From: Antechinus flavipes
Lineage: Eukaryota
Assembly (NCBI RefSeq): GCF_016432865.1
Contig: NC_067400.1
Location: 587,078,001 to 587,142,000, forward strand
DNA length: 64,000 nucleotides
Direction: 5' to 3'
In this document: positions 19,813-64,000 of the stretch, piece by piece
Position numbering within the stretch: position 1 is the first letter of the stretch
Layout: each line of letters starts with the position of its first letter
Program-made: the position numbers and the translations under genes
Notes under the pieces: generated by a model
Database searches by the model: none
The model's input: the letters and a program-made list of their open reading frames with translations, nothing else
What the model was told of the DNA's origin: nothing

Positions 19813-21274
19813 CTGTCTCTCTTTCCCCCTCCCTCCCTCCTTTCCATCCTTCCAATATCATATAGCTAGTAAATATCTGAGGTTGGGTCTGAACTCAGGC
19901 CTCCCCAAACTACTTTTCCATATTTATCTACATCCTTCAATGTTGTGGTCAAACTCCCCCTCTCCCAAACAGGGCCCTGTGATCTCTCTCCAGGTCTTTG
20001 TTTCTCATTTGGTTCTCCCTCTTTACCTTTTTAATTGTATTGTCTAACTTGCCCAAGGTCACATAGGTGCTAAAGAGTAGAACCTGTCTCTATCTGAATC
20101 TGTAATTGCAGTCATATACATATGCATAAGCAGTGGTGTGGGTACAGGACTTAAACCTTAAACTTGTGACCCCTTTTTGCCCAAGAATTTTTTACATAGC
20201 TCCAGGTACATAGGTATGTAAAATAGGTATACAAATTAAATATTTGCTGATAGTAAATCATAGTTTCATGACCTTCACATTCAGTTACAAGACCCCGTAT
20301 GAGGTTGTGGCCCACATAGTGGATAGTGGATGGACAGGACTTTACTTGGAGTCAATAAGACTTGAAATGGAATCTCCAGTCAGATATTCTTTGGGTGTGT
20401 GAATCCCTTAATCTCTTTTAATTTCAGTTTTCCCACCTGTAAAATAGGGACAATGTCTTCTAAGGTGTTTGGAGAATCAGTGAGTTAATAAATGAAAGGG
20501 ACTTTGCAAACTCTATGTAAATGCTAACTAGTGTTGTTATTAGTCCGTGTATTCAGTTCCCTTTGCTTCATGGCCCACCTCTTGGGACAGTTCTTCCAGG
20601 CTCTCTATCAGAGTTTTCCTCTCTCTGGGACTGCGCAAAAGAGTGATGGATTGGGAAACAGAAGGTCTATGTTTAACCTTGGGTTTTGCTGCTCATGTGA
20701 ACCTGGGGAAGTCACTCCTTGTTCTCCTCCAAAATGGAAATGGTGGATGAGATGCTTTCCAAATTCCTTTCAAGCTCTTTATGTGTTTGGATAAGTTTTG
20801 GTCTTTCTCTCTGTGTTCAGTGCCCAGCAGGGCCTGGGGGGCTGGAGAAGCAGCCAGATGAACGTGCCAGCTCCTAAAACCAAAGGGGATCTTGGTTGGG
20901 GCAAATGCCTCCAGTGCTTTTTTATTGCTTATATCATCATAATTAATTAATAATTACTATAAATATTAGTTATATTGCTTATGGTTGTTATTTCTGTGTC
21001 ACCACAAATAAGTTGGTTGCTGTGTGGGCAGTTGAGATGTGGTGGAAATAGTCCCCGGGGTGGAGTTAGGAGACAAAAATTTGAGTCCTGGCTTTGATAC
21101 TAAGAAGCAGTGTGAAAATGAATCATTTCTTTGGCCTGGATACCAAGAAGCAGAGGGGAAATAAGTTATTTCTCCTTTCTGGACCTCAGTCTTATCAGCT
21201 GTCAAATGTGGATGGAGAATTATACTAAATGATTTATTCAACTAAAATGCCATGTTTTAACATTTTATATTCGA

Positions 21275-22340
21275 AGGTCCTTCCAAGTTCTGACCTGTGT
21301 TCTAAGGGCCCTCCCAGCTCTGACCTTCTGGGTTCTAAGGGCCCTCCCAGCTCTGACATCCCAGGTTCTAAGGGTCCTCCCAGCTCTGACCTTCTGGGTT
21401 CTAAGGGCCCTCCCAGCTCTGACATCCCAGGTTCTAAGGGTCCTCCCAGCTCTGACCTTCTGGGTTCTAAGGGTCCTCCCAGCTCTGACCTTCCGGGTTC
21501 TAAGGGCCCTCCCAGCTCTGACCTCCTGGGTTCTAAGGGTCCTCCCAGCTCTGACATCCTGGGTTCTAAGGGCCCTCCCAGCTCTGACATTCCGGGTTCT
21601 AAGGGTCCTCCCAGCTCTGACATCCTGTGTTTTAGAGGTTTTCCCAGCTCTGACATCCTGGGTTCTAAGGGCCCTCCCAGCTCTGACCTTCTGTGTTCTA
21701 AGGACCCTCCCAGCTCTGACCTTCTGTGTTCTAAGGGCCCTCCCAGCTCTGACATCCTGGGTTCTAAGGGCCCTTCCAGCTCTGACCTTCTGTGTTCTAA
21801 GGGCCCTTCCAGCTCTGAACTTCTGGGTTCTAAGGGCCCTCCCAGCTCTGACATCCTGGGTTCTAAGGGCCCTCCCAGTTCTGACATCCTGGGTTCTAAG
21901 GGCCCTTCCAGCTCTGTCCTCCTGGGTTCTAAGGGCCCTTCCAGCTCTGACCTCCTGGGTTCTAAGGGCCCTTCCAGCTCTATCCTCCTGGGTTCTAAGA
22001 GCCCTTTCAATCATGACATCTTATGTTTTAATATACCTCCCAGATCTGTGGCTCTGTGTTCTAACATTCTTTCCAATTCTATTATTTTGTGTTTTAGGAG
22101 CCCTCCCAACTTTGCTATTCTATGTTCTAAGGCTTCTGTTAGTCATGTTCTATCATTCTATGTTCTAAGATGCTCCTCAGTTCTGACATTCTATACTCTT
22201 AATTTCCCTTCTAGTCCTGCCATTCTACCTTCTTATATTCTATGTTTAAGGTCCCTCACAATGGAGCTGTTCTATGTCCTGAGGACCTTTCAAGCTCTGA
22301 CTTTCTGCTCCAACATTCTTTGTTCTGAGATCCTTTCCAC
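21275..22340 (-). repeat. 33-bp minisatellite array 1 (about 21 homogeneous units plus a diverged tail)
   Basis: Unit ttctaagggccctcccagctctgacctcctggg; diverged 33-periodic copies continue from about 22000 to 22340. Confidence 0.95.
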
Positions 22341-22389
22341 CTCCTACATCCTCTGTGAGACTCTGCAGAGAGACTCCAGTGGAATCTAG

Positions 22390-23983: not shown

Positions 23984-24022
23984 CATTGGAGTCCTCTGTT
24001 CCTCTGGGAATATTTGGGTTTT
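23984..24022 (-). CDS. IGSF21: IGSF21 39-nt coding mini-exon (exon 9 equivalent)
   Basis: ctgcag|AAAACCCAAATATTCCCAGAGGAACAGAGGACTCCAATG|gtaagt. Translates (E)NPNIPRGTEDSN(G), identical to the recalled human peptide. Confidence 0.96.
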
Positions 24023-25796
24023 CTGCAGGGAACAAAAAAAGGAGAAGAGCATTAAGGGTCTGAGCAAAGTTCTGTGGCATAGGATGAAGCCTGAAAGATG
24101 GAAATGGGGGAAACTTTTGGAGTCAGAGATTCAGAGGTTGTTTTGTAGCATGTACTAAACCACGGCTTGGTAGACATCCCACCTTAGATGTGTACTTATA
24201 CTTCTTGGGGCCTCAGTTTTCTCATTGGTAAATGAGGGAGGTTGTAATGAGTAATCTTGAAGGTCTCTTGTGGTACTAAATCTGTGATTCTTTCATCTTG
24301 TTCTATCACACTGACTTTGGGGAGAGCTAAAGTGAATACTCAAAGGCCATTCTCTCAGGAGATTGAATAAGAATTTGAAAGATATTTAGCACAATGCCTG
24401 CCATGTAGTAGATGCTGCATAAATGCTCGTATATAACCTTCCTACAATACTACCTTCAAATTATCCACTTTCAAAGTCCTGTGCAAATGAAAGATTGTTA
24501 TTTTCACTAAATTTCTAAAATAATGACAATAATAATAGTAATAACCAACATTTTAATAACTCTCTAAAGTTTGCAAACACTTTATTATTTTATCTTAATA
24601 CGCCTGGGAGGTAGATGTTATTTTTATCCCTATTTTGCAGATGAGCAAACTGAGACATACAGAGGTTGAATCACTCAGAGGAACCTCACTACATTAACCC
24701 AGTTGTGGACTGGGTTTTCTTAATTCTCTAAGAACAACAAGAACGATCTCACGATCTCCCTCTGTTCTGGCATTCGCTCCCCCTTGTTGTCAGACAATTC
24801 TTTTTTGTGTCTAATCCAATTCGTTCATGTAGCACTCATCAAGGTTATTTCTTGGGGTTTAGTCCCTTCCAACTTCAAATTTGTGATTTTCCTATGGGGC
24901 AGAAGAACCCAATGCTGTTCTGATTACCACCTAGGACTGCTTTGGGGTGTGGATACAACCACAGCGGTCTTTTAATCCCTAGGTAAAGAAAGGGATCCCT
25001 CTTCTATGATCTTCATGGAGTCAGACAAGATGGTCTAGTTTAATATTTCGCAGTTGAGAGAGAGGAAATTACTTATCCAAAGCTGCACTGATAGTAAATA
25101 ATAGACAACATTTAAACTCGGGTCTTCTGCCTCCAAATAAAATCCTCACATCCTACTTCCTCTGCCCCAGTTGGCCTTCAGATCCAAAGAGCACCCTTCC
25201 TGAACCCTTACCTAGGGGTCCGTCCTTTTAGATTAAGATCTAGAGCCGGAAGAAGCCAGACATAGAGCTGGAAGTGGCTTTAGAATTTGTCTAGTTCAAT
25301 ACCTCATCTTACAAATGGGGAAACTGAGGCCCAGAGAGGCTAAGTTAAACGTAAGGTTATATTCTACAATTTACAAGGTAAACCTTATAAATCCAAGATT
25401 ATCTAAGCTAATAAGTCATATGGTCAGGATTCAAATCCAGGGCCCTTTCTGCTCTGTTTCTTCAAGGCCAGTAGATTGGGCAGGTAAGAGTTTGGTGGGT
25501 AAGTGCTGAAGTCAGGAAAACCTGAATTAAAATCTTGCCTCAGACAGCAATGGGATAACCCTTGAATCAAAACCACTTAGTTGCCATATGTTTCAGTTTC
25601 CTCATTTGTAAAATAGGGAATAATTATTATTCTCTTATAGGTCACTATATATTTACATATAATTGTGATTATTACCTTAATCCAGGGTTATTGTGAAGAT
25701 CACAAGTGTGTAAAGTGTAAAGTGTTTTGTAAAATTTAAACAATATAAACTCTAGCTATTATCATTCATCACTAGTTATTATTAGCATCATGATTA

Positions 25797-26381
<585 letters not shown>

Positions 26382-28624
26382 CTAGGGCAGGGAGAGAAGC
26401 AGAGTCAGAATCTTCTCCTTGGGCTGGCTGTCTTTCTCACACCTCCTTTTGTCATCCTTTGTCTATTTATCACTAATTTATCACTATTTATCCCTGCCTG
26501 AGGTCATTGAACATTAGAGCTGGAAGGAGCCTTAGAATATGCAATGTCAGAACTCGTATATCACTTAGCCTCTGCGGGCCTCAGTTTCCCCATTTGTAAA
26601 CTGAGGTCTTGAGCTAGTAGAGACTCTAGAATATAAAAGTGAGAGGGTGGCAGGCTCAAACCTAGACTCTCAGAGCCAAAGGATTTACCAATTGGGTTCA
26701 TCTTCTCTCCCTACAATAGAAAATAAGCTCCCTGAGAGCAGGGGCAGTTTCTTTTAATAATTGTTCCACAAGTGTGTCTTAGCTGGCTTGCGTGGGTTCC
26801 TGAGAGCTGACTGCCAAGTTTTTACTGACCATTTACACCACAGAAATCGGCAAGGGCCGTATATCAGGGGGCCTTGATTTCTTGTTCATTGATTATCTAG
26901 ACTTAAGAAAGGGCTGGAGAGAAAATTAAAATGCCCAGTGAAACTCAACAAATAGGTCTTAAGTACTTTTTGGAAGAGCTGGTTGTTAAACATTTCCTAG
27001 CTCACCCCTGATCCCAGCACTTGGTGTATATTTGTTGCATGTTGTCTCCCACATCAGATTGTTAGCTGCCTTTTGTGTTTTTATTTGTGCCCAGTGCTTA
27101 GCACAGTGCCTGGAACAAGGTAAGGACTTCATCAATGGAAGGACACGTGAATGAAGGAGGGAATAGACTTGGAATGTTGGCGCTGGGAGCTCAGAGGTCA
27201 CCCTTCTGGCTTTTTCATTTTTCAGATGAAGGAAATAAGGCAATTCACCCACGATCACAGAGCTAATTCAGAGCTGGGACGAGGAGGTGGATTTTATGGA
27301 GACCCTACTTTCCATTCCACCCTCAAATTGGGGACAAATGGTGAAGGGCACTAAGTGCCAGTTAAAAAAGGGATGGGAAGCCACTAGGGGGGTTTGCAAG
27401 GCAATGATGTGATCGGACTGTGCAAGAAAGAGCGATTTTGTCAAATGTGCGAGGTAGTCTGGGGGAGGGACAGGAGCCTGGGTTTGGAGGGTTTCACTAG
27501 TCCTGCTAAAGGGCCATGAAGGGTTCTGAGCCCCACGAAGGGGAGAGGAGAATTCAGAGGCTTCTTACCCTGCTAGTCCCCCTTGTCCCACCTAGATGTG
27601 GGTGTCAATAAGAATGAATCTGGGGGAGAAGTCACAGGCCTGCCCAGGATTAAGGGATATCTGGGGCTTCTCCTCAGCCTGCTATGGTGCCCGCTAGTGG
27701 ACCTGCCAGTTAGCTCCTGGCAGCAGAGCCCACTGATTGGGAGAGAGATGGGCCACGGGACAGAGGGAGCTGTCCCCTCGCCCTACCCTTTCCCTATGCT
27801 TGCATTAATACCAACAGGTCCCATTCCCCTTAACTCCCCCGAGGGGCCAGGATTGGGTGTTTAAGGTGCAGAGGGGATGAGAGAACAGCAGAGAAAAGGA
27901 TGTACAAGATGAGATTTTAGCTTGGTGGCCACAGCATGGAGGAGACCCAGACAGATCCCCACGCCGGGTCTTCAGTTCCCATTGTGCCAGGCGGAATCCC
28001 ACCACCATGGCCCACACTGAAGGAGCCCTTCAAGGGCAGAGAACCTGGCTTTAAATCTTGGCTGATACTTAGGCGTGGGGGAAATTCGGACAGGTCACTT
28101 TCACTCCGAGTCTTGGTTTCCTTTTCTGTAAAAAAGAGACTCAGACCATGTGACTTGCCAGGCCCCTTCCTGTCCAGCTTCAAATCCTGTGGTGCTGAGA
28201 TTCCACTTAGTGCCAAAATGTGCCCCAAGTCCACTTCCTAGGAGGGGACACGCTGCTCTGGGACCTCCCCATTGGGGAGGGATGGGCCATGGGTGGGCCT
28301 GGCCCAGGAAAGGACTCTAGCAACCAGACCCCAACCTGAGGCAGGAGGGCAGCCGCTGCTCCGGGGGTTGGGAGGGACTCTGCCCTCGCTGTGCTCCTGC
28401 CAGCCTGCCCACAGCTCGGCTCCCGAGCCAGTCTTATTACCCCGGCAACAGTACCCCGTGTCTGAGCCGCTCCCCCGTCACTGGGACCAGCTGCTGTGTG
28501 TCAGGATCCCTGAGGAGGCTGGGAGGAAAAATGGTTGGCTTTTCAGTGAGTGGGAGCTTCAGATGGGCTGGGCTGCAGGAAAGGGGAGGGGGTTATGAGT
28601 CCCAAAGTATCCCAGAACATCAGT

Positions 28625-28915
28625 GCTTCAGGATCTTAGAACATACACAGATAGAAGGCTTCAAGAATATGTAGTGTCAGAGCCGGGAGGGACCTTAGGA
28701 CACAGAAGGACAGAGTTGGGATAGAGCACAGGATGTCAGAGGTAGGAGAGACCTTAGAATACAGGATATCAGAGCTGGGAAGATCTTTAGAACACAGAGA
28801 ATGTCAGAGCTGGGAGGATCTTAGAATGTCAGGGCTAGGAGGGCATTTATAACCCAGGATGTCAGAGCTGGGAAGGTCTTTAGAACACAGAGAATGTCAG
28901 AGCTTAGAATACATA
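28625..28915 (+). repeat. 33-bp minisatellite array 2 (diverged, about 9 units)
   Basis: Units such as agaacacagagaatgtcagagctgggaggatctt and agaatacaggatatcagagctgggaagatcttt. Confidence 0.85.
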
Positions 28916-30134
28916 ATGCTACAATAGGTGAAGAGTCAGTATATAAAGTGTCAGATCTTAGACTAGATCTTAAAACCTATCCAACATCAATGGTCCATTT
29001 AAAAGAAGGCCCTGAACCTTAGGAAGATTGTCTGAACTTCCCAAAAGTCACATAGTGAAGAGCAGAAAGAAGGTCAGACCCCAGTTCAGTTCTGCTTGTC
29101 CCATAAGATTCACATCTGCAAATCCATCCTAGGAAACAGCAATAACTTTCTCCTCCATGCCCACCTTTCCCCGTTCATTCCCACCTGCCACCACAAATCC
29201 ACACACAATGTAGACATGTCTTCTGCCTCCAATTGCCTTCCCTCCTCCCTGGACAGAATCTCAGATGTCTTGCTCATGATTTTAATTAATTGTCTCTGTT
29301 TTCATTCTCTCTAAATTAAATTGGCCATGCGCTGGAGGCTACCACACTCTTCTTCCACTTCCCTCTCCCCTTCCTGGGTCTGGTTAGTGGAACTTCCCTT
29401 CAGGATAGGCGGACTCCAGGGTACAAAGGAATAGTGGGAAGTCAGACCTGGCTTCCTCCACTGAACCCCAGGCCCCAGGACTTTTGGAAAACAGTGCATC
29501 TGCACTGGCCCTCTTTTATAAATGAGAATGTCTGACAAGGGCATGGATTCCCGTGTACAGAAGGAGCAGAATGTGAGGAAGAGGAGGAGGAAGACGGAGA
29601 GGAGAAAAAGAGAAGGAAATTGTGTCCAAGAGAATGTACGACAGGGACCACTGGAGTGATGCTACGTGGGCAAGAGCGTGATCCAGTGAGACTAAACGCA
29701 GACAGTATGCTCTAGTGGAAGGAGCTCCTCCTGGCAGTCAGTGATTTACTGGGTGCTGTTAAGCAAACGGCTTTCCCTCTCTAGACTTCAGCTTCCTAAT
29801 CTATAAAATGAGAGATGAGCTGTATTCTTTCTAAGGTTCCTTAACTTTTAACATTCTGTGTTCTATGGTTCTCAATAGTTCATCAATCAATAAGCATTCA
29901 TAAAGCACTTGCTGTATGCAAGACACTGTGCTAAGGACACAAATTCTTGTCTTCAAGGAGTTTCCATTCTGTAGGTGGAGGAGCAAAGGAAGGGGAGAAG
30001 ACATCTATAAATCAGAGTATACAAAATAAATATAGGATGGGTGGGAGGTAGCATTAAAAGGAAAATATGGAACTAGCAGCAGGGGAACCAGGAAAAGTCT
30101 CCTCCAGGAGATGGATCTTGAACCAAGTCTTAAA

Positions 30135-30450
30135 GGCTCTGACATCCTGTATTCTAAGGGCCCTCCCAGCTCTGACCTCCTGGGTTCTAAGGGCCCTCCC
30201 AGCTCTGACCTCCTGGGTTCTAAGGGCCCTCCCAGCTCTGACCTCCTGGGTTCTAAGGGCCCTCCCAGCTCTGACATCCTGGGTTCTGAGGGCCCTTCTA
30301 GCCCTGACATTCAGTATTCTAAGCTCCTTCTAGTCTGACATTCTAGGTTTCATGGTCCTTTTAAGTTCTGACATTCTATATTTTAAGGTATATTCCATCT
30401 TTGATATTGTATGTTCTAAAACCTATTTTAGAACTAACATTCTGTGATCT
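30135..30450 (-). repeat. 33-bp minisatellite array 3 (about 5 young and 4 old units)
   Basis: Young units at 30140-30310 decay into AT-rich copies ending in aacattctgtgatct. Confidence 0.92.
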
Positions 30451-31221: not shown

Positions 31222-32531
31222 GGAATCCACACCCACTATTTTAGTAATGAGGAAACTGAGGCCCCCAAATGCTAAGTGATTTGCTCCATGTCATGCAGTT
31301 TCAGAGGCTTGATGGAATCAGCATAATAATGAGAGTACAAGGAGGAAACCAGCAGACTTTCTTAGACAATATTCCCCAGTAGGCCACATCAGGTGACTGA
31401 AAGGTAAAGAGAATACAAGATCCCATTGTGCTCATTATTTGTTGAATGATTAAAAAAAAAAAAAGGTTTTGATTTGGCAAAGCAAAATGCCTTTAGACAT
31501 TCTCCTCCAGGGAAGAGACAGACCCAAGAGATGAATAATGATAGGCCTTAGAGAAACCTCTAGAGCTAAGCATTATGGACCGGTTAGTCCAGTGGTCAGA
31601 ACTTACAGGTTATAAAGTGAGGCTCATGGATTTGGATTGTATCCCCTAGGAGTCTTGAGGGTTTCTCCACCTCACCCCAAGCCATCTGTCTCCACAAATA
31701 TTTGATGATTGCTTGGGGATGGGAGAGGAATGGGGGTGGCTCTGTGTGTGGCAGGAGAGACCAGGCAAGAGACTACTAATTAATAATGTCCCATTTTTCA
31801 AGCTCTTTAAGGTTTACAAAGCTCTTCCCTCACAACAGCCCTGGGAGGAGAAGATCTCCATTTTACTTCCAGCTTTATTATCTCTGCAAACAGGAGCATC
31901 TGGAGGACTTCAGCACTAGAGGGAATCCCAATTCTATTCAGACCCGATGCTGGCCAGCCTACCAGAGAATGACAAGCACGTAGCTTTCTGCTTTATGCCT
32001 CGATTGATATTAGTAATCAGAGGGTCGTCAAACAAAGTGATCTCTGCTGTTACATCTTCCAAGAAAGCCTGCATGATTCTGACATATTTGTGGGAGGAGA
32101 GGCCTGAAGGCAGCATTTTGTTTTTAGTGAATCAAAAACTTGGGAGTTTTTTTCCTCCTAGTTAATAAACAATAGGCAGAGTGAAGTCTTGTATTCCCTG
32201 CCCCTTTAAGTCAACTGTCATAGGATCTTAGATCTAGAAAGGATCTCAGAGTTCACTGAGTTCAATTCCATCATTTTCCAGAGGGAAAACTGAGGCCTAC
32301 AGAGATGAAGGGATTTGTCTAGGGTTATCCAGGTAACAAATGTCTGAGGGCAGATTCGCATCTAGTTCTTCTTGATCCCAAGGTCTAGCATCTTTTAAAG
32401 GCCATATTACCTCCGAGTTTCCTTGACTTCCTTCAAGATTTATCTCCAATCTCACCTTCTGTACAAGTCCATTCCTGATTCCTCCAGCTACTGGGGTCTT
32501 TCCCTTTGGGATGATTACCTCCTTTCTATAT

Positions 32532-32564
<33 letters not shown>

Positions 32565-35245: not shown

Positions 35246-35248
<3 letters not shown>

Positions 35249-35292: not shown

Positions 35293-35296
<4 letters not shown>

Positions 35297-35515: not shown

Positions 35516-35959
35516 CCGGGGCCTGCAGACCCTTCCCATCTCCGGGTTGGGCTCTGAGCAGCTGCTGCCAGCCGCCTTAGCAGCAGATGGCTCAGCCGGC
35601 TCCCTCCCTCCCTCCCGAGCTTTCTCATCAAGATGTCGCCTCCGCAGCCTGATCCAGCTGCCGTCACCGCCTCATCAAGTCCATCAGCAGCTCTTGGAGC
35701 CTCAGCCCTGGCAGCTTCCCTTCCCTCACTTCTCACCCCCTTCCATCCCCCACAAGTCTCTGACAGCTTCGGAAAGAAGATTTCCTAACAGGGTGCAGTG
35801 GAGGGCACCTGGGGACTGGGGGTGCGGGGAGACTTGGCTGCCTCTCCCGGCTCTGCTCCTTCTGCTTGGATGACCTGTCCCTCCACTTCTCTGGGCCTCA
35901 GATTCCCCACCTGTATGGGTGGGGTGACTAGATTATCTCCAAATTTCTTTTAAAACTAA

Positions 35960-36470
35960 CATTCCATGTTCTAAGGGCCCTCCCAGCTCTGACCTCCTGG
36001 GTTCTAAGGGCCCTCCCAGCTCTGACCTCCTAGGTTCTAAGGGCCCTCCCAGCTCTGACCTCCTGGGTTCTAAGGGCCCTCCCAGCTCTGACCTCCTGGG
36101 TTCTAAGAGCCCTCCCAGCTCTGACATCCCGGGTTCTAAGGGCCCTCCCAGCTCTGACATCCCGGGTTCTAAGGGCCCTCCCAGCTCTGACATCCCAGGT
36201 TCTAAGGGCCTCCCAGCTCTGAGATCCTGAGTTCTAGGGACCCACCCAGCTCTGACCTCCTGGGTTCTAAGGGCCCTCCCAGCTCTGACATCCTGGGTTC
36301 TAAGGGCCCTCCCAGCTCTGACATCCTGGCTTCTAGGGATCCACCCAGCTCTGACCTCCCGGGTTCTAAGGGCCCTCCCAGCTCTGACCTCCCGGGTTCT
36401 AAGGGCCCTCCCAGCTCTGACCTCCCGGGTTCTAAGGGCCCTCCCAGCTCTGACATCCTGGGTTCTAAAG
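35960..36470 (-). repeat. 33-bp minisatellite array 4 (about 15 units)
   Basis: Same unit as array 1, directly following a MIR-type body at about 35889-35950. Confidence 0.95.
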
Positions 36471-46758: not shown

Positions 46759-46944
46759 ATTACAACAGGAAAAGGGGTAGATACTGTTTCCTGGGCGTCT
46801 CCAGGTACCAGTGTCAGGACTAGATCTTGCCCTTTTGAAGATTTATCCCCTTTCTTAGAATATTTCTGTTCCACTCCCAGAGTATTCCATAAAACCAAGA
46901 AAAGTCAGAAAATTAATTAGCATTTGGAAGGAGAACTCACAGTG

Positions 46945-47748: not shown

Positions 47749-47749
47749 G

Positions 47750-48800
<1,051 letters not shown>

Positions 48801-49324: not shown

Positions 49325-51195
49325 TTCTGGAGGCCAGGGACTCCTGTGCCATGTTGGGGGGCTGGCTCCCTGAGAGGGAACTCTTATCTTCTCCCTCAAA
49401 ATAAAGGTCCCCGAGGGCAGGAACTCCTGCGCCATGTGGGGGGGGCTGGCTCCCTGAGAGCACGAACTCTATCTTCTCCCTCAAAATAAAAGTCCCCGAG
49501 GGCAGGAACTCCTGCGCCATGTTGGGGGGCTGGCTCCCTGAGAGCACGAACTCTATCTTCTCCCTCAAAATAAAAGTCCCCAAGGGCAGGAACTCCTGCG
49601 CCATGTTGGGGGGCTGGCTCCGTGAGAGCACGAACTCTATCTTCTCCCTCAAAATAAAAGTCCCCGAGGGCAGGAACTCCTGCGCCATGTGGGGGGGCTG
49701 GCTCCGTGAGAGCACGAACTCTATCTTCTCCCTCAAAATAAAAGTCCCCAAGGGCAGGGACTCCTGCGTCATGTTGGGGGGCTGGCTCCGTGAGAGCATG
49801 AACTCTATCTTCTCCCTCAAAATAAAAGTCCCCAAGGGCAGGGACTCCTGCGTCATGTTGGGGGGCTGGCTCCCTGAGAGCACGAACTCTATCTTCTCCC
49901 TCAAAATAAAAGTCCCCAAGGGCAGGAACTCCTGCGCCATGTTGGGGGGCTGGCTCCCTGAGAGCGGGAACTCTATCTTCTCCCTCAAAATAAAAGTCCT
50001 TGGAGGGCAGGAATTCCTGCGCCATGTTGGGGGGCTGGCTCCTGAGAGCACGAACTCTATCTTCTCCCTCAAAATAAAAGTCCCCAAGGGCAGGAACTCC
50101 TGCGCCATGTGGGGGGGCTGGCTCCCTGAGAGCACGAACTCTATCTTCTCCCTCAAAATAAAAGTCCCCAAGGGCAGGAACTCCTGCGCCATGTTGGGGG
50201 GCTGGCTCCGTGAGAGCGGGAACTCTATCTTCTCCCTCAAAATAAAAGTCCCCAAGGGCAGGAACTCCTGCGCCATGTTGGGGGGCTGGCTCCCTGAGAG
50301 CGGGAACTCTTATCTTCTCCCTCAAAATAAAAGTCCCCAAGGGCAGGAACTCCTGCGCCATGTGGGGGGACTGGCTCCGTGAGAGTGGGAACTCTATCTT
50401 CTCCCTCAAAATAAAAGTCCCCGAGGGCAGGGACTCCTGCGCCATGTTGGGAGGCTGGCTCCGTGAGAGCACGAACTCTTATCTTCTCCCTCAAATTAAA
50501 AGTCCTTGGAGGGCAGGAATTCCTGCGCCATGTGGGGGGACTGGCTCCGTGAGAGCACGAACTCTATCTTCTCCCTCAAAATAAAAGTCCTTGGAGGGCA
50601 GGAACTCCTGCGCTATGTGGGGGGGCTGGCTCCGTGAGAGCACGAACTCTATCTTCTCCCTCAAAATAAAAGTCCCCGACGGCAGGAACTCCTGCGTCAT
50701 GTTGGGGGGCTGGCTCTCTGAGAGCGGGAACTCTTATCTTCTCCCTCAAAATAAAAGTCCCCAAGGGCAGGAACTCCTGCGCCATGTGGGGGGACTGGCT
50801 CCGTGAGAGTGGGAACTCTATCTTCTCCCTCAAAATAAAAGTCCCCGAGGGCAGGGACTCCTGCGCCATGTTGGGAGGCTGGCTCCGTGAGAGCACGAAC
50901 TCTTATCTTCTCCCTCAAATTAAAAGTCCCCGACGGCAGGAACTCCTGCGCCATGTGGGGGGACTGGCTCCGTGAGAGCACGAACTCTATCTTCTCCCTC
51001 AAAATAAAAGTCCTTGGAGGGCAGGAACTCCTGCGCTATGTGGGGGGGCTGGCTCCGTGAGAGCACGAACTCTATCTTCTCCCTCAAAATAAAAGTCCCC
51101 GACGGCAGGAACTCCTGCGTCATGTGGGGGGGCTGGCTCCGTGAGAGCGGGAATTCTATCTTCTCCCTCAAAATAAAAGTCCCCGAGGACAGGAA
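49325..51195. repeat. 84-bp minisatellite, about 22 copies, CpG-containing
   Basis: gagagcacgaac at 49456 and 49540 (period 84). Unit gagagcacgaactctatcttctccctcaaaataaaagtccccaagggcaggaactcctgcgccatgttggggggctggctccct. Confidence 0.97.
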
Positions 51196-53963
51196 CTTGA
51201 GAGTTACAGGACCTGGGTTCAAATCTTACTTCATAAACTTATGACCTGTGTGACCTTAAAGGGTCCTCAAACTTTTTAACTAGGGGGCCAGTTCCCTGTC
51301 CCCCAGACTGTTGGAGGCCGGACTCTAGTAAAAACAGAAACTTTGTTCTGTGGGCCTTTAAAGAAAGAAACTTCCTAGCCCTGGGTGAGGGGAATAATTG
51401 TCCTCGGCTGCTGCATCTGGCCCGAGGCCGTAGTGTGAGGACCCCTTTCCTAGGGCTTCAGGTTCTTTATCTATAAAAGGAGGTTGGACTAGCTGGTTTT
51501 TGAGCTCCTTTAAATTCTAAATCTAGGCTCTCTTGTGCCGCCCAAGATCCCTGTAATTTTGATTCTCCCTTATCTAGTTGGAGACGGGCTTTCTGGGACC
51601 GGGGACTAATTGTGTCTTTCCCTATTAGACTGGGAGTTTCCCAGAGGCGTCCATGTTACAGGCAAGGCTGCTTTTTGGGGGCACGGATCACACCTCCTCC
51701 CAAACCTGCCTCATTACGCTTAGCCAGGATTCCAGAGAAAGCCAAAGTGCCCCCATCAGAGGCGGGGTCCCACCTGAGAGGGGGTCTTGGAACACACCGG
51801 CGGCTTCTGACTTTATACAGGGGATGGGAGCCACTGAGAATGTGGAGATAGAATAAGTAGCCGGGAGAGGAAATTAGAAGAATATTGGAAGAAGAAATGG
51901 GAGAAAATTGTATGTGTGTGTGTGTGAGCCTGAAATCTGAACAGGTGTGCTTGTGTGGGAGGGAAGAGGTGCGCAGTCTGAAGAAAGAAAATTGTCCTCT
52001 AGCTTTCTCTTCTAATGGGGAATTCAAGTTTTGAGCTGCGGAATTTAATTCAATTTGTTGTTTTTATATTTTGGTACATGCGCTCAGAGGCCTGTGGGAA
52101 ACGGGTGTCTCTTTAATAAATCGTATAAATAAATCGATGGGAGCTGAGGAGGGAGGCGGTGTACATGTGGGAAGCATCACTGAGGGAGGCTGGGTCCCAG
52201 GAGAGTGAAAATAGGGGAGGAAAAAGAGGAAGAGAGAGACAATGGGAGGAGAGGAGACAGAATTAGTGAGGGGGAGGGGGGTGTTGCTGGGGGAGGGGGT
52301 GGAATCCAATTCAGGAGAGGCCAATCTGTCAGGGTTTAAAGCCTCCAAAAATGAATGTCGCTTGCACATAAAGGCCTGCTTTGGGTTTTTTGAAAAGTGC
52401 TTCAAAAGCCGGATTGTAATTTATATCAAAGGATTCCTCAGAGCTTCCAACATCCCAGGCAGATGCAAGAAGCTGGCAGAATATGGGGGGCTGAGAAGCA
52501 TTTTCTAAAAAGGGGGAATATTTGATTGTATGAAACCTTAGAGGCCTGAAAGGTTTCAAGGGCCCGAGGCAGCGTTGGCAGTGGCAGTGGGAATGGGGGG
52601 GAAGGGACATCAGAATCCTACCAGCAGCTTCCTGGAGGGCCCCTCCCAGGATACCCTCGGAGAACGGCAGGCAGCACCTGTCGATGGCCCTTTGTCGCTG
52701 GCTGTGTTAGCGGTGAGCATGTGGGAGCAAGTAGGAGTAATAGAGTGGGGGGAGTGGGAGTAGGTGTTCGGAACATTCTTTTGTACCCCAGTCTTCTCTG
52801 GGGTCTAGGAGGTCACATGGAGCCTTTTATCCTGTTCTTTCTATTGTGCCCATTGTATCTGGGGAGGAAATGTGGGTTTCCAGTGGAGTTGGTGCAGAAT
52901 CACATTGATCTTTAAATCAAGAGGATTTGTGGCTTTTGTGGCAGAGCCCACCAGCCAGGTCCTTTGGGAATCCCCAGAGAATTAAGAGGTGGACAAGACT
53001 CTAAGGTCTGCCATCTTTCATTTCATGGAAGAAAGGGGTGTCCGAGCTTGTACACGCTTCCAAAGGTACTAAGTAGTAAAATGTGAAATTTAAAGGCAGG
53101 TCATAATTCTAGAACTGGAAGAGATTTTGGAGGCAATCTAATGCAACCTCCAGATTTTACAGATGAAGAAACTCAGGTCTGGGGAAATGATCTAAAGTCA
53201 CTTGGGCAGTAAGTATCAGAGACGAGCCTTGAGTATAGGTCATTATTCCAAATCCAGAGCCCTTTCCATAATGCTTTGCTGTTTTTTTTTTTTTTTTTTC
53301 TGTGTAGTTAGAAGGAATGAGGCACATGGAGAAAGTCTGGAGTCAAATTTCTCCCTGATTCCTGCTTGCCTCTCCACGCTGTTCCCTTCTCCTAAATCAC
53401 TCCAGGTTAGCCCTTCCAACCACCCATTCTCTCAACCACACTCAAATTGTCCCTTAAAATAGCCATGACAATAAAATTGGGAAAATTATTAAGGTTTCAA
53501 GGATATTAGGGTGGCCCTAAAAGAAAACTGCCAGTTAGATTTTATTCATTCTCCCTTTTCTTTGTTTTTCTGAGCCTCAGGATCGGGGAGGAGAACATGT
53601 TCTTTTAGCTCTGGGAGACTAGATGAGAAGGAAAGATGGGGTGGGTCATTGTGGGCAGGTAAGACCAAAAATATTGTGGTGGCTCATAAAAACATGGGCT
53701 GAAGAATTGGAGGGGACTTTAGAAATGTTCCAGTCTCACTTGTTTGTTTTGTTGATGAGAAAATCAAGTCTCAAAGAAGGTGTGTGATATTTTCCAAGGC
53801 CATGCAGGTAGAGAGCGGCTGATCTGTCCTTCAAACTCGGCTCCTCAGACTCCTGGAGATAATTCTGGCCTGGTTTGGCAGCTAGGTTCTCCCTCATGGT
53901 CATCCTCATCTCCCAGCTGAACCTTCATTTGGAATGCTGAGGAAATGGGATGTCCAAACGTTA

Positions 53964-54167
<204 letters not shown>

Positions 54168-55004
54168 TCAATTTCAGGGCTTCGATTTCACTTCCAATCA
54201 GCGAGTCAGCCTGGTCTGTCCGGTTCTCCCTCATAGCCCCTCCACAAAGCCCCCAGTGAGCGTCAGGAATGAGCACCCCTCCCGGGTCTCACATAACACT
54301 TTACTTTGTAAATGAACTTTCCATGAAATGTTAAATGTTCCAGGATGTCAGAGCTGGACATTGGAGAGGTCTGTGGTTGTCTATGACATCACAGTGTGAC
54401 CTGGCTCCAGAGGGTGGCCACGCAGACTTAAGGGAATTGGAACCCAAGGGGACTCACTTGGAGGTGAGGTAGGCAATCCCTCTCATCTCCGGGAGTTTAG
54501 ATCCTTCCCCTCTGGGTAAGAGGAACCCACATTTTTCCTTTGCATTACAATTCACCTAAGTCTAAGCAGCCATTCTTTGTGCCATTAGGAAAAAAATCAT
54601 TGATTTAGGGCAGATCAGCTAGATGGGAGCACCAGACTGAGTTAGGAAGATCTGAGTTCAAATCCAATCCCATTCACCCACTAACTGTGTGACCCTGAGC
54701 AAGTTACAATAACCCTGATTGTCTCAGTTTCCCAGCTGGAGAAGGAAATATCAAACCATTCCAGTATTTTTGCCAAGAAAATCTCAAAAAGGGGTCATGG
54801 TGAGTCAGTAAAACTGGAATGGCTAAACAATGACAACAAGATTTAGGACTGGAACCTCAGTAGCCCTCTGCTTTTACAGATGAAAAACCTGAGGCTGAGT
54901 GAGGATAAATTACTTGTCTTACATCACACAGGTTTTAAATGACACAGGCAGGATCTGAATCCCGATCTGGATTCCAGAGTCAGCCCTATTCCCTCAGCAT
55001 TGTT

Positions 55005-56170
55005 CTAATCCATGTTTATTTCTTATCTTCCTCCTAAGGCTGGGACCACCTGGAATCCATGTTTATTTCTTTTCTTACTAAGGCTGGGACCACCTGGAAT
55101 CCATGTTTATTTCTTGTTTCCTTATTGAGGCAGGGACCACCTGGAATCCATGTTTATTTCTTTTCTTACTAAGGTTGGGACCACCTGGAATCCATGCTTA
55201 TTTCTTTTCTTACTAAGGCTGGGACCACCTGGAATCCATGCTTATTTCTTTTCTTACTAAGGCTGGGACCACCTGGAATCCATGCTTATTTCTTTTCTCC
55301 TTACTAAGGTGGGACCACCTGGAATCCATGCTTATTTCTTTTCTCCTTACTAAGGTGGGACCACCTGGAATCCATGTTTATTTCTTTTCTTACTAAGGCT
55401 GGGACTACCTTGAATCCATGTTTATTTCTTTTCTTACTAAGGCTGGGACTACCTTGAATCCATGTTTATTTCTTTTCTTACTAAGGCTGGGACTACCTTG
55501 AATCCATGTTTATTTCTTGTTTCCTTATTGAGGCAGGGACCACCTGGAATCCATGTTTATTTCTTTTCTTACTAAGGCTGGGACCACCTGGAATCCATGC
55601 TTATTTCTTTTCTCCTTACTAAGGTGGGACCACCTGGAATCCATGTTTATTTCTTTTCTTACTAAGGCTGGGACTACCTTGAATCCATGTTTATTTCTTT
55701 TCTTACTAAGGCTGGGACTACCTTGAATCCATGTTTATTTCTTTTCTTACTAAGGCTGGGACTACCTTGAATCCATGTTTATTTCTTTTCTTACTAAGGC
55801 TGGGACTACCTTGAATCCATGTTTATTTCTTGTTTCCTTATTGAGGCAGGGACCACCTGGAATCCATGTTTATTTCTTTTCTTACTAAGACTGGGACCAC
55901 CTGGAATCCATGTTTATTTCTTTTCTTACTAAGGCGGGGACCATCTGGAATCCATGTTTATTTCTTTTCTCCTTACTAAGGCTGGGACCACCTTGAATCT
56001 ATGTTTATTTCTTGTTTCCTTACTAAGGCAGGGACCACCTTGAATCCATGCTTATTTCTTTTCTCCTTACTAAGGTTGGGACCACCTTGAATCCATGTTT
56101 ATTTTTTTTCTCCTTACTAAGGTTGGGACCACCTTGAATCCATATTTATTTCTTATCTTCCTCCTAAGGC
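55005..56170. repeat. 44-bp minisatellite (44-48 bp variants), about 26 copies
   Basis: tactaagg at 55211 and 55255 (period 44). Unit aatccatgtttatttcttttcttactaaggctgggaccacctgg. Confidence 0.97.
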
Positions 56171-60030: not shown

Positions 60031-60059
60031 TATCACATGTCCTCATCTTCCAGGAGTTG

Positions 60060-60565
60060 TAGAATATCAGATCTGAGAAAGAGAAACCTTAGAATCCAGA
60101 GTGTCAGAGCTGGCAGGGCCCTTAGAACCCAGGAAGTCAAAGCTGGGAAAGAGAACCCTTAGAACCCAGAGTGTCAGAGCTGGGAGGGCCCTTAGAACCC
60201 AGGATGTCAGAGCCGGGAGGGCCCTTAGAACCCAGAATATTAGAGCTGGGAGGGCCCTTAGAACCCAGGAGGTCAGAGCCAAGAGGGCCCTTAGAACCCA
60301 GGAGGTCAGAGCTGGGAGGGCCCTTAGAACCCAGGAGGTCAGAGCCAAGAGGGCCCTTAGAACCCAGGAGGTCAGAGCCGGGAGGGCCCTTAAAACACAA
60401 AATGTCAGCTGGGAGAGAACTTAGAACCCAAGATGTTAGAACTGGGAGGGACTTTGAACAGAGAAAATCAGAATTGGAAAGGTCCTTAGCACACAGAATG
60501 GCAGAGTAGGGAAGGACTTCAGAGCAGTTATTAGACATAGGAAGGACCTTAGAACACAGAATAAT
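60060..60565 (+). repeat. 33-bp minisatellite array 6 (about 14 units)
   Basis: Same unit; diverged copies at the right end lead into a MIR-type body at about 60575-60635. Confidence 0.93.
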
Positions 60566-62384
60566 GGAAGTGCAAAATATCTAAGAAATAATTTAATCCA
60601 ACTCCCTCATTTTTCAGGTGAGAAAACTGAGATGCTAACTGAGAGGGCCTTCAGTATTCCTGTCTGTTGCTGATTGGTGAAAGCTTGCTTAATCATTAGT
60701 GTGTACAATGGGAAGACAAACTTGTTTGAATAACCCTGTAAAGAGAATTCAGCTAGGAAAAAGAATTTATTCTGACCTGTATGATGGAAACAAATCCAAA
60801 TGACCTTTGCAGGATCTGTTATTTTGGTCTCCCCATCCCTCTGTCTCTTTGGGAGCTCACTACACTCAACAGCCAGAATTGTTAGGAAATGCAGGGTCCC
60901 CACAGTTTTATGTATGACATATTTTGTCTATAGCTGGAAAAATCCTTTTTCTGGGGTATCTCTGTGGAGCTTACATTTCCTCTAGTCCCCCAAGTACATC
61001 TTTCTGCCCAAGGGCTCGGGCCCTCAGCATGTCTGCTCTCATTAATCACGTTGCTTCAGTCAATGAGGTGAGGTTTCTCTTGTGGGGAGGGGAGAGAAGT
61101 ACCCAGTTTGAGGGTGGGTGGGTAGGATTAAAAACTAGTTGCAAATTACATTATTTGCAAAAATCCATTCTTTCCTCTTGGCGTGCCGGGTCTATTGACT
61201 ATTCCTTTTTCAATCCTGCTCTATTCATTAGACCCATGTCCAGCCCCACTCCACCTCCCACCTCCCACCCAACCAGTTCATACAAGTGTCCATGAATAGA
61301 AATGTTCCTTTTTAAATCTTTCTTTACTTTTCTCGGTGCCCATTTCTTATCCCATAATTTAATGGCCTCTCCTTCATCCTTTTCCATCAACGTCCCTTCT
61401 GCTCTATCACGACATTGGTTGAAACCCAGATCTCTTGGAAATCCCTCATTTCACCTACCTAACAATGGGGTATCATCTTTGTCCCTCTGCCCTGGGCATT
61501 CATCACTGAATGTCATACTAGCTCTAAGTGATTTGGGCAGTCTTGGGGTCATTTGCTAGGCTCTAAGCACTTAGAAGACAGGACTACCACATTAAGTCAC
61601 CTAGAACCCAAGAAGAAATCAGAGAACATAGAATTGTCAGAATCAGATAGTTTCCTCGAGCATCAGTTTTCCCATTTGTGAAATAGGAATAATAATAGGT
61701 TCTACTGCACAAGTTACTGTAAGGATCAAATGAGAAAAAATAAATTCTTTGCAAACCTCAGGGCACATGTCAATTATTATTATTATTATTATCTTTTTTG
61801 ATAGGATTCAAGTAAAAATAGTCCTAGAAGAAATTGTTTCCTCCTTTTGTTATTATTAATAATTAGTAATTCACTATTCATAATTATTGATTTAATATTA
61901 CTATAATAAATAGAATTGGAATGGATCTTTGAAGAGAAAACATTACAATATAGATTGTTCCAAGTGGAAGAGAGCTTAGGAAGAATGGTAAAGCTGCAAG
62001 GGACCTTTGAATGTAGAATATTTGAATTGGAAGGAGCTTTAGATCATTGAATGCCAAGTCAGAAAATTCTTAAGTACCTAGATTTTTAGAGGAAGAAGGG
62101 TTCTTAGGACAGAGAATAGCACCAGTAGTCCCCTGGAACCAGCTTGAACTGGAAAACTGATTAATAAATTCTCAGAAAAAGCATTGACATGGGAATTGCC
62201 AAGTGCTACAAAACAGGGTTGAGTTTATTGTTTTGTTGATTGTCTAGGCTTAGGAAGTGATGGAGACAATTTCAGTAATGCAGATTAAATATAAAAGATG
62301 TAAAAGTCTATTGAGGGTACAGCTATTTTTCTCCAGGAGAGCTGGTTGTTCAACAATTTTAAGCAATCTCTGAATAATTGTAAA

Positions 62385-63372
62385 GAGCTTTAGAACCTAG
62401 AATGCTAGAAGTGGAAGGAATTTTAGAACAGGAAATGTCAGAATCCTAGGACATAGAATTTCAGAACTGGAAATGCCTTTAAAATATGAAATGTCAGAGC
62501 TTGGATGGCTCCTAGAACAGAGTATGGCAGAACTGGGAGGGCCCTTAGAACCCAGGATGTCAGAGCTGGGAGGACCCTTAGAACACAGGAGGTCAGAACT
62601 GGGAGGGCCCTTAGAACACAGGAGGTCAGAGCTGGGAGGGCCCTTAGAACCCGGGATGTCAGAGCTGGGAGGACCCTTAGAACCCGGGATGTCAGAGCTG
62701 GGAGGACCCTTAGAACCCAGGATGTCAGAGCTGGGAGGGCCCTTAGAACCCAGGAGGTTGGAGCCGGGAGGGCCCTTAGAACCCAGGAGGTTGTAGCTGA
62801 GAGGGCCCTTAGAACCCAGGAGATCAGAGCTGGGAGAGCCCTTAGAACCCAGGAAGTCAGAGCTGGGAAGGCCCTTAGAACCTAGGATATCAGTGCTGGG
62901 AAGGCCCTTAGAACCCAGGATGTCAGAGCTGGGAGGGCCCTTAGAACCCAGGAGGTTGTAGCTGGGAGGGCCCTTAGAACCTAGGATATCAGAGCTGGGA
63001 GAGCCCTTAGAACCCAGGAGGTCAGAGCTGGGAAGGCCCTTAGAACCTAGGATATCAGTGCTGGGAAGGCCCTTAGAACCCAGGATGTCAGAGCTGGGAG
63101 GGCCCTTAGAACCCAGGAGGTTGTAGCTGGGAGGGCCCTTAGAACCCAGGAGATCAGAGCTGGGAGAGCCCTTAGAACCCAGGAGGTCAGAGCTGGGAGG
63201 GCCCTTAGAACCCAGGATGTCAGAGCTGGGAGGGCCTTAGAACCCAGGAGGTCAGAGCTGGGAGGGCCCTTAGAACTCAGGGTGTCAGAGCTGGGAGGGC
63301 CTTAGAACCCAGGAGGTCAGTGCTGGGAAGGCCTTTAGAACCCAGGAGGTCAGAGCTGGGAGGGCCCTCAGA
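62385..63372 (+). repeat. 33-bp minisatellite array 7 (about 26 young units plus an old flank, traces from about 61900)
   Basis: Same unit; followed by MIR-type text (gaactttagagattaaaatagcctgattcacttattttatagatgggg). Confidence 0.95.
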
Positions 63373-64000
63373 ATGAGTGCTGCAATTGGGCTGAAAGGAA
63401 CTTTAGAGATTAAAATAGCCTGATTCACTTATTTTATAGATGGGGAACAGCCTCTAGGCCGTTGGATGGACATGTCCCGTAGCTAAGAAATGCAATAGGG
63501 TGGATGTCATCCCCTCTCCCTTCTGTCTCCTTTTCCGATGATCTCACTAAATCACTCCCAATCCTTGCTGCCAGGCTAGTGTCCTGGTCCCAGAAGGACA
63601 CATCTGGGCAGAACGTGACCCGGGCCACGAGTGCTGGCCCTCAGCTTGCCCATCAGTCAGAGCTGGCAGGGGCTGACCTAGAGGCCACCAGCTCCACCTG
63701 CTTCTTGTACAGCTGGGACGCTGAGCCCCGGAGGGCACTCTGTGCCTCATAGAACGTCCCAGGAGCCCCTGAGCAGTTGATGACCACTCACAGAAGGATG
63801 ATCGTAATGATGAAAACTTTTTTACACAGTCCCAGAGTGTTTGCATTCCTCTTTCCAGGCAGCTGACTTTGGAAGACTCATTTTATTTATCTTATTTATA
63901 AGGCTCTTATTTTTCTTTTTGTCTCCCCACCTTTAGTACAGGGCCTGCTCCGGACTGGGCAGCTCTCTCACGGATGGAGAGCACTGAGAGTTTTACTGTG

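Follow-up and report, generated by a model that had tools for sequence, protein, structure and literature searches.

A SINE-derived minisatellite family in concerted evolution in the introns of IGSF21

The window, i.e. the whole 64-kb stretch of Antechinus flavipes DNA that was analysed, contains seven tandem arrays of period 33 (A1-A7), which comprise ~110 units in total, occur in both orientations, and are all intronic in IGSF21, spanning 42 kb (in the devil, the IGSF21 gene range is 383 kb). The array limits were set by TRF and then by wrap-around alignment to the 33-bp unit, which added decayed edge units. Seven dispersed arrays were found where a preliminary description of this DNA had placed them, and TRF reported no other period-33 array in the window. 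Self-BLAST of the array flanks revealed no homology from one array to another, so the loci are independent of one another and did not arise by segmental duplication. Nothing suggests a functional role for them. The features discussed below are as follows ("old" refers to ancestral-type units and "young" to units of the array cores; E-values are from the profile search described below):

21160-21269, + strand: MIR3-type body 5' of A1, with CORE end, linker and decayed first tail unit (E 4.9e-8)
21270-22233, + strand: array A1, ~29 units (TRF, wrap-around alignment, unit table)
25251-25459, - strand: solitary MIR3-type copy with one unamplified tail unit (control)
28601-28904, - strand: array A2, ~9 degenerate units
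28905-29061, - strand: MIR-type body 5' of A2, marginal profile match at 29061-29012 (E 0.021)
29687-29869, + strand: solitary MIR3-type copy with a single tail unit and octamers, tail complete, 266 bp upstream of A3
30136-30450, + strand: array A3, 4 near-perfect young units, 1 hybrid, then ~5 old-type units
32219-32424, - strand: solitary MIR3-type copy with one unamplified tail unit (control)
35865-35967, + strand: MIR3-type body 5' of A4, with linker and decayed resident first tail unit (E 1.1e-6)
35968-36477, + strand: array A4, 15 young units and a partial old-type unit at the end
46932-47781, - strand: array A5, ~22 young units
47782-47856, - strand: possible GC-shifted MIR-type body 5' of A5, marginal (E 0.055)
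60087-60559, - strand: array A6, 5 old-type units (5' edge), then ~9 young units
60560-60634, - strand: MIR3-type body and linker 5' of A6 (E 6.3e-7)
62390-63373, - strand: array A7, ~26 young units, 5-6 old units at the 3' edge
63374-63447, - strand: MIR3-type body 5' of A7, with linker and decayed resident first tail unit (E 0.006)

A1 (TRF: 21294-22005, 21.6 copies) opens at the 5' edge with a single old unit and closes at the 3' edge with 7-8 decayed old-type units; the GC-rich core between them (21301-21993) counts ~21 units and starts with a 66-bp higher-order pattern. A2 (28722-28904, 5.7 copies, 70% matches) is an older, decaying member of the family, whose own consensus shows G-to-A and C-to-T differences from the young unit. 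A3 (30136-30389, 5-7 copies) starts in the middle of a unit and abuts unrelated sequence at its 5' end, and A4 was delimited by TRF as 35968-36468 (15.2 copies). A5 (46987-47745, 23.0 copies), which starts ~315 bp downstream of the large IGSF21 exon, is bordered by a hybrid unit on the 5' side and by 2-3 old units on the 3' side, and carries a private variant, C at unit position 19. The young units of A6 (60087-60450, 11.0 copies) carry a private TTG variant and a 66-bp pattern, and A7 (62493-63373, 26.8 copies) contains a higher-order repeat of five units (165 bp).

A CORE-SINE profile (consensus: ...GTGTGACCTTGGGCAAGTCACTTAACCTCTCTGGGCCTCAGTTTCCTCATCTGTAAAATGGGG), trained on 44 copies from elsewhere in the window after masking of the arrays and their flanks, was run on both strands against 200 nt on the 5' and 3' sides of the arrays. 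On the sense strand it identified a co-oriented body 5' of six of the seven arrays (three strong matches, one clear, two marginal), with the matches similarly placed and ending ~35-60 nt ahead of the array; 5' of A2, where the profile match is marginal, the body agrees with the CORE region by eye. No adjacent CORE-SINE body was detected by the profile in the 200-nt 5' flank of A3. The 3' flanks gave no match on either strand at E up to 10, and the antisense strand of the 5' flanks gave only weak matches (best E 0.28). The CORE-SINE background is dense, with equal scores in 7-12% of strand-specific 200-nt tiles (training copies counted); against it the binomial P-value is 0.01 if the three strong matches are counted, 0.003 with the fourth added and 1.7e-5 with six of the seven arrays. 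Next to the arrays, the bodies can be made out only across the 3' half of CORE, and they are only ~51% identical to one another. Body, linker and first unit run on into the array in A1, A4, A6 and A7, more weakly in A2 and A5, and not in A3. The co-oriented MIR-type bodies reported earlier agree in position with the profile matches at six arrays but not at A3, and the GC-shifted body suggested for A5 at 47790-47860 has a match in place, albeit a marginal one.

The consensus of the ancestral-type (edge) unit ends in ATTCTGTG, i.e. in the CR1 octamer ATTCTRTG (PMC5729268), followed by the octamer-like TTCTAAGG, so that what the arrays repeat is the recognition region at the end of a CR1/L3-dependent SINE. 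Within the window, solitary tails of MIR3 type align to the unit with scores of 36-51, compared with a maximum of 31 for 10 simulated sequences, and the linker-plus-tail architecture of three solitary copies recurs in the array-bearing ones. These similarities identify the unit as a MIR3-type CORE-SINE tail, of the CR1/L3 type and not the L2-type tail of MIR, as had been proposed when the monomer was first described as a MIR3/CR1 terminus with its octamer. The element is probably MIR3 (THER-2), judging from the copies in the window and from the MIR3 consensus. The solitary copy upstream of A3 contains a direct repeat (29829-29869), formed by TTCTAAGG and TTCTATGG 32 nt apart; the internal microhomology invoked earlier for slippage is present.

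The unit table reveals the same two-layered anatomy in every array, namely a homogeneous core bordered by decayed units. The edge units are AT-richer (GC 0.42 vs 0.61 in the cores) and have decayed to a similar degree as the SINE bodies (76% identity to the old consensus for the edge units, 59-76% identity to the CORE consensus for the bodies). The core unit, TCTAAGGGCCCTCCCAGCTCTGAC(C/A)TCCTGGGT, has an identical consensus in six arrays, and the two commonest unit types are present in 5-6 arrays. Units differ between arrays by 1.5-4.0 per 33 nt on average, which equals the differences within arrays, so that the net core divergence between arrays is at most ~0.4 per 33 nt (<= ~1%), with no fall with distance inside the window. 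Compared with the ancestral tail, the cores have 4-6 AT-to-GC changes in common, although 18 AT sites were available for such a change; these include three transversions, each to the identical base across arrays, and 12 other AT sites are unchanged in all arrays. The cores have G, C, C, C and G at unit positions 8, 13, 25, 27 and 31, respectively. In edge units and in solitary and resident tails, position 8 is mostly T and never G (bar one poorly aligned resident tail) and position 13 is mostly T; edge units have A, T and T at positions 25, 27 and 31. The derived GC-rich unit was absent from the resident and solitary tails examined in the window.

Each core is nested in phase inside old-type units, and the register is kept across every junction between old and young units. 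In A1, A3, A5 and A7, the unit at the 3' boundary is a hybrid, with a young 5' half and an old 3' half joined inside the shared CCAGCTCTGAC block, as expected for homologous exchange. Some variants (position 25 as A or C, 29 as C, 29-30 as CA, 9 as T) recur in several arrays. No multi-unit variant map common to arrays was found among the seven, and the longest exact stretch common to two arrays (85 nt) can be explained by consensus units. The combination of minimal divergence between cores with bodies that are only half identical is not explained by an independent runaway of each array and implies a common recent origin of the cores. The identical derived consensus and the in-phase nesting require copying between loci or a shared source. 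The private variants and the 66-bp and 165-bp higher-order repeats indicate later growth in place. The data show the anatomy, the polarity of the changes, that the cores have a common origin, and that the junctions preserve the phase. The IGSF21 arrays are a SINE-derived minisatellite family in concerted evolution, not seven independent accidents.

As the history of this family we propose two phases and a spread by homology-dependent copying, a reading to which we assign a probability of roughly 0.55. In the old phase, MIR3-type CORE-SINEs would have been inserted in the present IGSF21 introns with a CR1-type tail composed of the 8 nt TTCTAAGG, 17 nt, and the octamer ATTCTRTG. The tail may then have been duplicated into short arrays of 2 to ~8 units via the two octamer-like direct repeats 33 nt apart. 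This duplication could date from the insertion itself, if the reverse transcriptase realigned, or from shortly afterwards, with slippage or unequal exchange as the mechanism. In the second, much younger phase, the single derived unit would have arisen by the 4-6 AT-to-GC changes, which are consistent with GC-biased conversion, and would have entered other existing tail arrays by homology-dependent copying, with the old tails serving as landing pads. Non-allelic gene conversion and synthesis-dependent repair templated by another array are the candidate processes. The seeded core of near-perfect repeats could then grow locally by unequal exchange or slippage, giving rise to private variants and higher-order repeats. 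We infer the mechanism of copying, its range (local or genome-wide) and the first duplication of the old units. The window, the only one analysed, captures no inter-array copying event directly. The lack of a SINE body adjacent to A3 counts against the two-phase history, as do the lack of multi-unit variant maps common to arrays and a net divergence that is independent of distance inside the window. More tentatively, ancient SINE tails could act as homology landing pads in general, on which one evolved GC-rich array spreads without transposition, by ectopic repair synthesis, among neighbouring MIR3 tail arrays or even genome-wide, its perfect repeats expanding once implanted; we consider this possible, but rather less than an even bet.

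The preliminary description had regarded each array as a runaway of its own MIR3 tail, seeded by reiterative reverse transcription at insertion or by slippage; taken in full, this model involves no exchange between loci. The arrays do sit at MIR3-type tails, octamer-like direct repeats 32-33 nt apart exist in a solitary copy, the multi-unit edges of old type have diverged as far as the bodies, and the terminal octamer microsatellite is where CR1-type reverse transcriptases prime (PMC5729268, PMC4316615). Such a scenario is nevertheless very improbable, since neutral concerted evolution in isolated arrays would fix different changes in each of them, whereas six loci have the identical derived consensus, with the same subset of AT sites changed; this unit is absent from solitary and resident tails, and the cores remain within ~1% net divergence beside bodies that have drifted to ~51% identity. 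Reiteration by the reverse transcriptase or slippage can explain at most the old edge units; of the recurring SINE-tail amplification suggested earlier, the co-oriented position at old CORE-SINE tails stands, but the cores share a derived unit. Parallel evolution, array by array, by GC-biased conversion together with selection among units for an expansion-prone structure (a CCCAG-N10-CTGGG stem and an AGGGCCCT palindrome) or for a protein-binding motif would fit the fact that every core change is AT-to-GC, that three changes build a 5-bp stem and that one builds an 8-bp palindrome. Young trimers are predicted to fold (as ssDNA) at -19 to -21 kcal/mol, compared with -1.6 to -4.6 for the old edge, but the z-scores against dinucleotide shuffles are just -1.3 to -2.0, which indicates that this stability reflects mostly GC content. 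Moreover, the variants at positions 25, 29, 29-30 and 9, neutral under this model, are also common to several arrays, and the 12 other AT sites are unchanged in all of them, so that we give parallel evolution little credence.

Dispersal of a young array by a mobile or extrachromosomal route would make the family a satellite spread genome-wide with no more than a preference for MIR3 tails. It could involve a CR1/L3-dependent element that bears an array and whose 5'-truncated retrocopy primed on tail-like target sites, or reintegration of circular DNA. This would account for the identity of the unit at independent loci in both orientations, and CR1-type priming relies on microhomology to the octamer (PMC5729268). 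We consider it unlikely, as no poly(A), recognisable target-site duplications or young SINE/LINE body accompany any core, the register is preserved at both core junctions (which random integration would rarely achieve), and seven arrays inside 42 kb suggest proximity-dependent spread. Furthermore, MIR3 (THER-2) is listed with the ancient interspersed repeats of mammals, and in the devil the SINE with the most recent activity is the L1-driven WSINE1 (PMC3403934). The identical consensus unit in six arrays might also be taken as a sign of copies of a single segment or of misplacement of one array in the assembly, but flanks without homology, diverged SINE bodies specific to each array, private variants, and each array's own higher-order pattern and old edge units make an artefact or segmental duplication hardly credible.

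How minisatellites begin and how one tandem repeat reaches many euchromatic sites are open questions; in one survey, the postulated mechanisms accounted for only ~6% of TE-derived human tandem repeats (PMC3389668). Here, both layers survive next to each other at seven loci: ancestral multi-unit SINE tails, which display octamer direct repeats that could seed duplication, and in-phase young cores of a single origin. If the landing-pad reading is true, it would provide a concrete and testable route for the dispersal of tandem repeats through euchromatin, and the IGSF21 arrays would be the first documented mammalian example of a SINE-derived satellite family.

Classical GC-rich minisatellites, which evolve by biased gene conversion, have units of 10-100 bp and arrays of 0.3-1 kb; like the IGSF21 arrays, they are GC-rich and show interspersed variant units and decayed edges. 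The preliminary description left open whether the phenomenon had been described before, but its kind is already known from squamate SINE-derived satellites (sSats; Vassetzky et al. 2023, PMC10702118) and from TE-derived human minisatellites (PMC3389668). The direct-repeat model of minisatellite initiation (Ahmed and Liang 2012, PMC3389668, citing Haber and Louis) resembles our case in that duplication of a unit between two short direct repeats (here TTCTAAGG and TTCTRTG(G), spaced by 32-33 nt) is followed by slow expansion in place, with particular TE regions acting as hotspots; unlike in that survey, where initiation and expansion occur at single TE insertions, the IGSF21 unit is a derived sequence common across loci. 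The CR1-type 3' end comprises a reverse-transcriptase-binding hairpin and an (ATTCTRTG)n microsatellite (PMC5729268, PMC4316615), i.e. an 8-bp repeat at the very end, whereas the period found here is 33 bp and includes the octamer together with the upstream tail; reiteration by the now extinct L3/CR1 enzyme may lie behind this period. The closest known kind is the sSats, which occupy many loci genome-wide with a subtelomeric preference, have a terminal unit that runs on to the end of the SINE, and are homogeneous within and between loci (PMC10702118). The IGSF21 arrays likewise consist of tandem units derived from part of a SINE, with a terminal unit that continues into it, and form dispersed short loci, seven in the window, with units homogeneous within and between loci, one variant coming to dominate the long ones. 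They differ from the sSats in their source, the CR1/L3-type tail of MIR3, in a unit of only 33 bp, and in the nesting of young cores within far older arrays of ancestral units.

TRF analysis identified exactly seven arrays with a period of 33 bp in the window, each with 5 to 27 copies and 70–94% matches, at the positions named in the preliminary description. Their spans were determined by wrap-around alignment to the unit, which reaches decayed edge units beyond the TRF limits; the alignment was run locus by locus (which recovers A6), as very high-scoring arrays shadow their neighbours in such scans.

Spans of the seven 33-bp arrays by wrap-around alignment (window coordinates)
21270-22233, plus strand, array A1
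28601-28904, minus strand, array A2
30136-30450, plus strand, array A3
35968-36477, plus strand, array A4
46932-47781, minus strand, array A5
60087-60559, minus strand, array A6
62390-63373, minus strand, array A7

In a self-BLAST of the window, the flanks of one array showed no homology to those of another; the arrays are therefore independent loci, and segmental duplication or a single misplaced array is ruled out. An exact scan of metagenome contigs with a 25-nt piece of the GC-rich unit gave 0 matches, and protein word searches with the ORF that crosses A5 and with A1's decayed 3' edge returned no match.

Exon-by-exon tblastn comparison matched database IGSF21 proteins to minus-strand exons in the window, which were placed singly rather than as a joined spliced model.

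IGSF21 exon matches by tblastn (window coordinates)
54140-53994, minus strand, exon match
48834-48097, minus strand, large exon, inside an island of GC 0.6–0.7
26336-26250, minus strand, exon match
26072-25878, minus strand, exon match
24077-23925, minus strand, exon match
16411-16307, minus strand, last exon match

Because these exons lie on the minus strand at ~54.1 to 16.4 kb, the window falls inside IGSF21, whose range in the devil is 383 kb, and all seven arrays are intronic. A5 starts ~315 bp downstream of the large exon; the IGSF21 exon is ~95% conserved. Two other tandem repeats were also noted near IGSF21 exons. An 84-bp tandem array (49330-51197; 22 copies, 92% matches, GC-rich, with a 169-bp higher-order period) is located ~500 bp upstream of the large exon in the gene sense, and a CT-rich, low-complexity tandem duplication of 1.65 kb (16602-19853; copies 16602-18249 and 18204-19853, 98.7% identical) adjoins the last exon match.

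The unit-by-unit table reveals that all arrays are two-layered, with a homogeneous GC-rich core (the "young" unit) inside and decayed, AT-richer ("old") edge units on one or both sides, and that the period stays in register throughout every array. The core unit is TCTAAGGGCCCTCCCAGCTCTGAC[C/A]TCCTGGGT, with GC 0.61, while the edge units (GC 0.42) yield the ancestral-type unit TCTAAGGTCCCT(C/T)CCAGCTCTGACATTCT(G/A)TGT. In its last eight bases the latter reads ATTCTRTG, known as the terminal microsatellite in elements of the CR1 type (PMC5729268, PMC4316615), and the following unit opens with the octamer-like TTCTAAGG. Unit positions 8, 25, 27 and 31, and in part 13 and 30, distinguish the core consensus from the edge consensus, all changes being AT-to-GC. 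In single tail units of solitary SINE copies and in the first tail units resident beside the arrays, position 8 is T or C (G occurs only in one poorly aligned resident tail) and position 13 is mostly T. Furthermore, at positions 8 and 31 of the edge units T is far commoner than A, which decay of G would not give. The absence of G at position 8 from the well-aligned tails and the excess of T over A at the edges thus show that the GC-rich unit is the derived state. Identity to their own consensus is 76% for the edge units, and identity of the adjacent SINE bodies to the CORE consensus is 59–76%, which makes the short arrays of ancestral units about the same age as the SINEs themselves.

Inspection by eye of the sequence 5' of A1, A4, A6 and A7 (in the unit sense) identified the end of a CORE region, …CTCAGTTTCC-CATCTGTAAAATG…, followed by a short linker, …GACTAGAT-ATC, and a decayed first tail unit continuous with the array. 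A CORE-SINE profile was trained on copies from the rest of the window, the arrays and their 200-nt flanks being masked against circularity, and has the classical CORE sequence as its consensus. This profile matched the sense strand of the 5' flanks of A1, A6 and A4 with E-values of 5e-8 to 1e-6 and, more weakly, those of A7 (E 0.006), A2 (E 0.021) and A5 (E 0.055). The matches end at a similar place, ~35–60 nt before the array. No match was found in the 5' flank of A3 or, at E up to 10, in the 3' flank of any array, and the antisense strand of the 5' flanks gave weak matches only (best E 0.28). CORE-SINEs are dense in the window, and equally good scores are reached by 7% to 12% of strand-specific 200-nt tiles; against this background the binomial P-value is 0.01 for three, 0.003 for four and 1.7e-5 for six of the seven arrays. 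MIR3/THER-2 constitutes 2.7% of the devil genome (678,295 copies; PMC3403934), a density at which 64 kb would normally contain about a dozen. Three solitary copies of the MIR3 type share the same architecture of body, linker and tail.

Solitary MIR3-type copies with a single tail unit (window coordinates)
29687-29869, same body-linker-tail architecture
25251-25459, same body-linker-tail architecture
32219-32424, same body-linker-tail architecture

The first of these is separated from A3 by 266 bp. Isolated tail-like matches score 36–51 against the unit, compared with at most 31 in simulated sequence. The 5'-flank matches, the like architecture of the solitary tails and the octamer end together support the proposed origin of the arrays from SINE tails. 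The short direct repeats expected within the tail were found as well: in the solitary copy at 29829, TTCTAAGG and TTCTATGG lie 32 nt apart, a pair that supplies the short direct repeat required by the classical model of minisatellite initiation (PMC3389668).

Three further elements deserve mention here. A decayed MIR-type element on the minus strand (26497-26676) carries ~1.5–2 old-type tail units without a young core and may illustrate a multi-unit tail that has stayed unexpanded. A lone stretch of 19 nt matches the young-type unit perfectly (TCCAGCTCTGACATCCTGG; 54340-54358, minus strand); it has neither array nor SINE body, scores 38 against the simulation maximum of 31 and may represent a collapsed array or chance. 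Finally, a 44-bp tandem array (55007-56159, and 54868-54987; 25.5 copies, 91% matches) starts ~20 bp past the head of a CORE-SINE in antisense orientation and is thus a second SINE-adjacent minisatellite, with a unit unrelated to the 33-bp one.

Comparison of the cores indicates that they did not arise separately. The consensus unit is exactly identical in six arrays, and the two commonest unit types are present in five or six. Mean differences between arrays (1.5–4.0 per 33 nt) equal the within-array level, which leaves a net divergence between cores of at most ~0.4 per unit, or roughly 1%, whereas the adjacent bodies are only ~51% identical to one another. Several arrays also have putatively neutral variants in common (A or C at position 25, C at 29, CA at 29–30, T at 9). 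A2 is a degenerate member; G-to-A and C-to-T changes separate its own consensus from the young unit. Had the arrays evolved in concert while isolated from each other, different changes would have become fixed in each, at close to the neutral rate; nor can chance account for the independent fixation, at six loci, of changes at the same 4–6 of the 18 AT sites, including three transversions to an identical base. The identical consensus, the low net divergence and the shared neutral variants, set against the diverged bodies, therefore show that the cores have one origin, and the earlier suggestion of seven separate runaway events, each from its own SINE tail, fails for the bulk of the arrays. Each array nevertheless has a history of its own: C19 is private to A5, TTG at 14–16 to A6, and ACA at 20–22 within a 165-bp repeat to A7, while A1 exhibits a 66-bp alternation. 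These private variants and higher-order patterns show that local expansion came after the shared seeding.

How the young unit reached the different tails is suggested by the junctions between the layers. Register is kept at all of them, and the 3' boundary unit of A1, A3, A5 and A7 is a hybrid with a young 5' half and an old 3' half, joined in the CCAGCTCTGAC block common to both unit types. Such in-register hybrids would be the expected trace of homologous exchange and would be rare under random integration. This weighs against dispersal of the unit by a mobile element or circular DNA, as do the flanks of the cores, where we found neither poly(A) tracts nor evident target-site duplications, and no SINE or LINE body of young age. 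MIR3 is counted as an ancient repeat in the devil, whose most recently active SINE, WSINE1, is driven by L1 (PMC3403934). We consider the mobile route unlikely. Convergent evolution of the same unit in each array could draw on the fact that in every young unit (30153-30251 and the other cores) the derived changes form a CCCAG-N10-CTGGG stem and the AGGGCCCT palindrome, and that young trimers fold, as single strands, at about -20 kcal/mol compared with -2 to -5 for old units. However, z-scores against shuffled sequences are only -1.3 to -2.0, and the arrays share neutral variants too, which makes convergence a very improbable explanation. Expansion driven by hairpins was likewise rejected, as these z-scores are not significant and the stability does not significantly exceed that due to GC content.

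Given the in-register hybrids, the lack of mobile-element hallmarks beside the cores and the age of MIR3, we favour, with a probability of roughly 0.55, a four-step model. Ancient multi-unit tails would have arisen first; one unit would then have evolved under GC-biased conversion; this derived unit would have been copied into other tail arrays by non-allelic conversion or repair synthesis; and the implanted perfect repeats would have grown locally.

The original observation stands and the derivation from SINE tails is supported; as the mechanism, independent runaways give way to a family of SINE-derived minisatellites that evolve in concert. In squamates, SINE-derived satellites have been described in which the terminal unit continues into the SINE and which are homogeneous both within and between loci (PMC10702118); the authors of that study had not met such satellites in mammalian SINEs. 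In human, minisatellites derived from transposable elements are common (PMC3389668).
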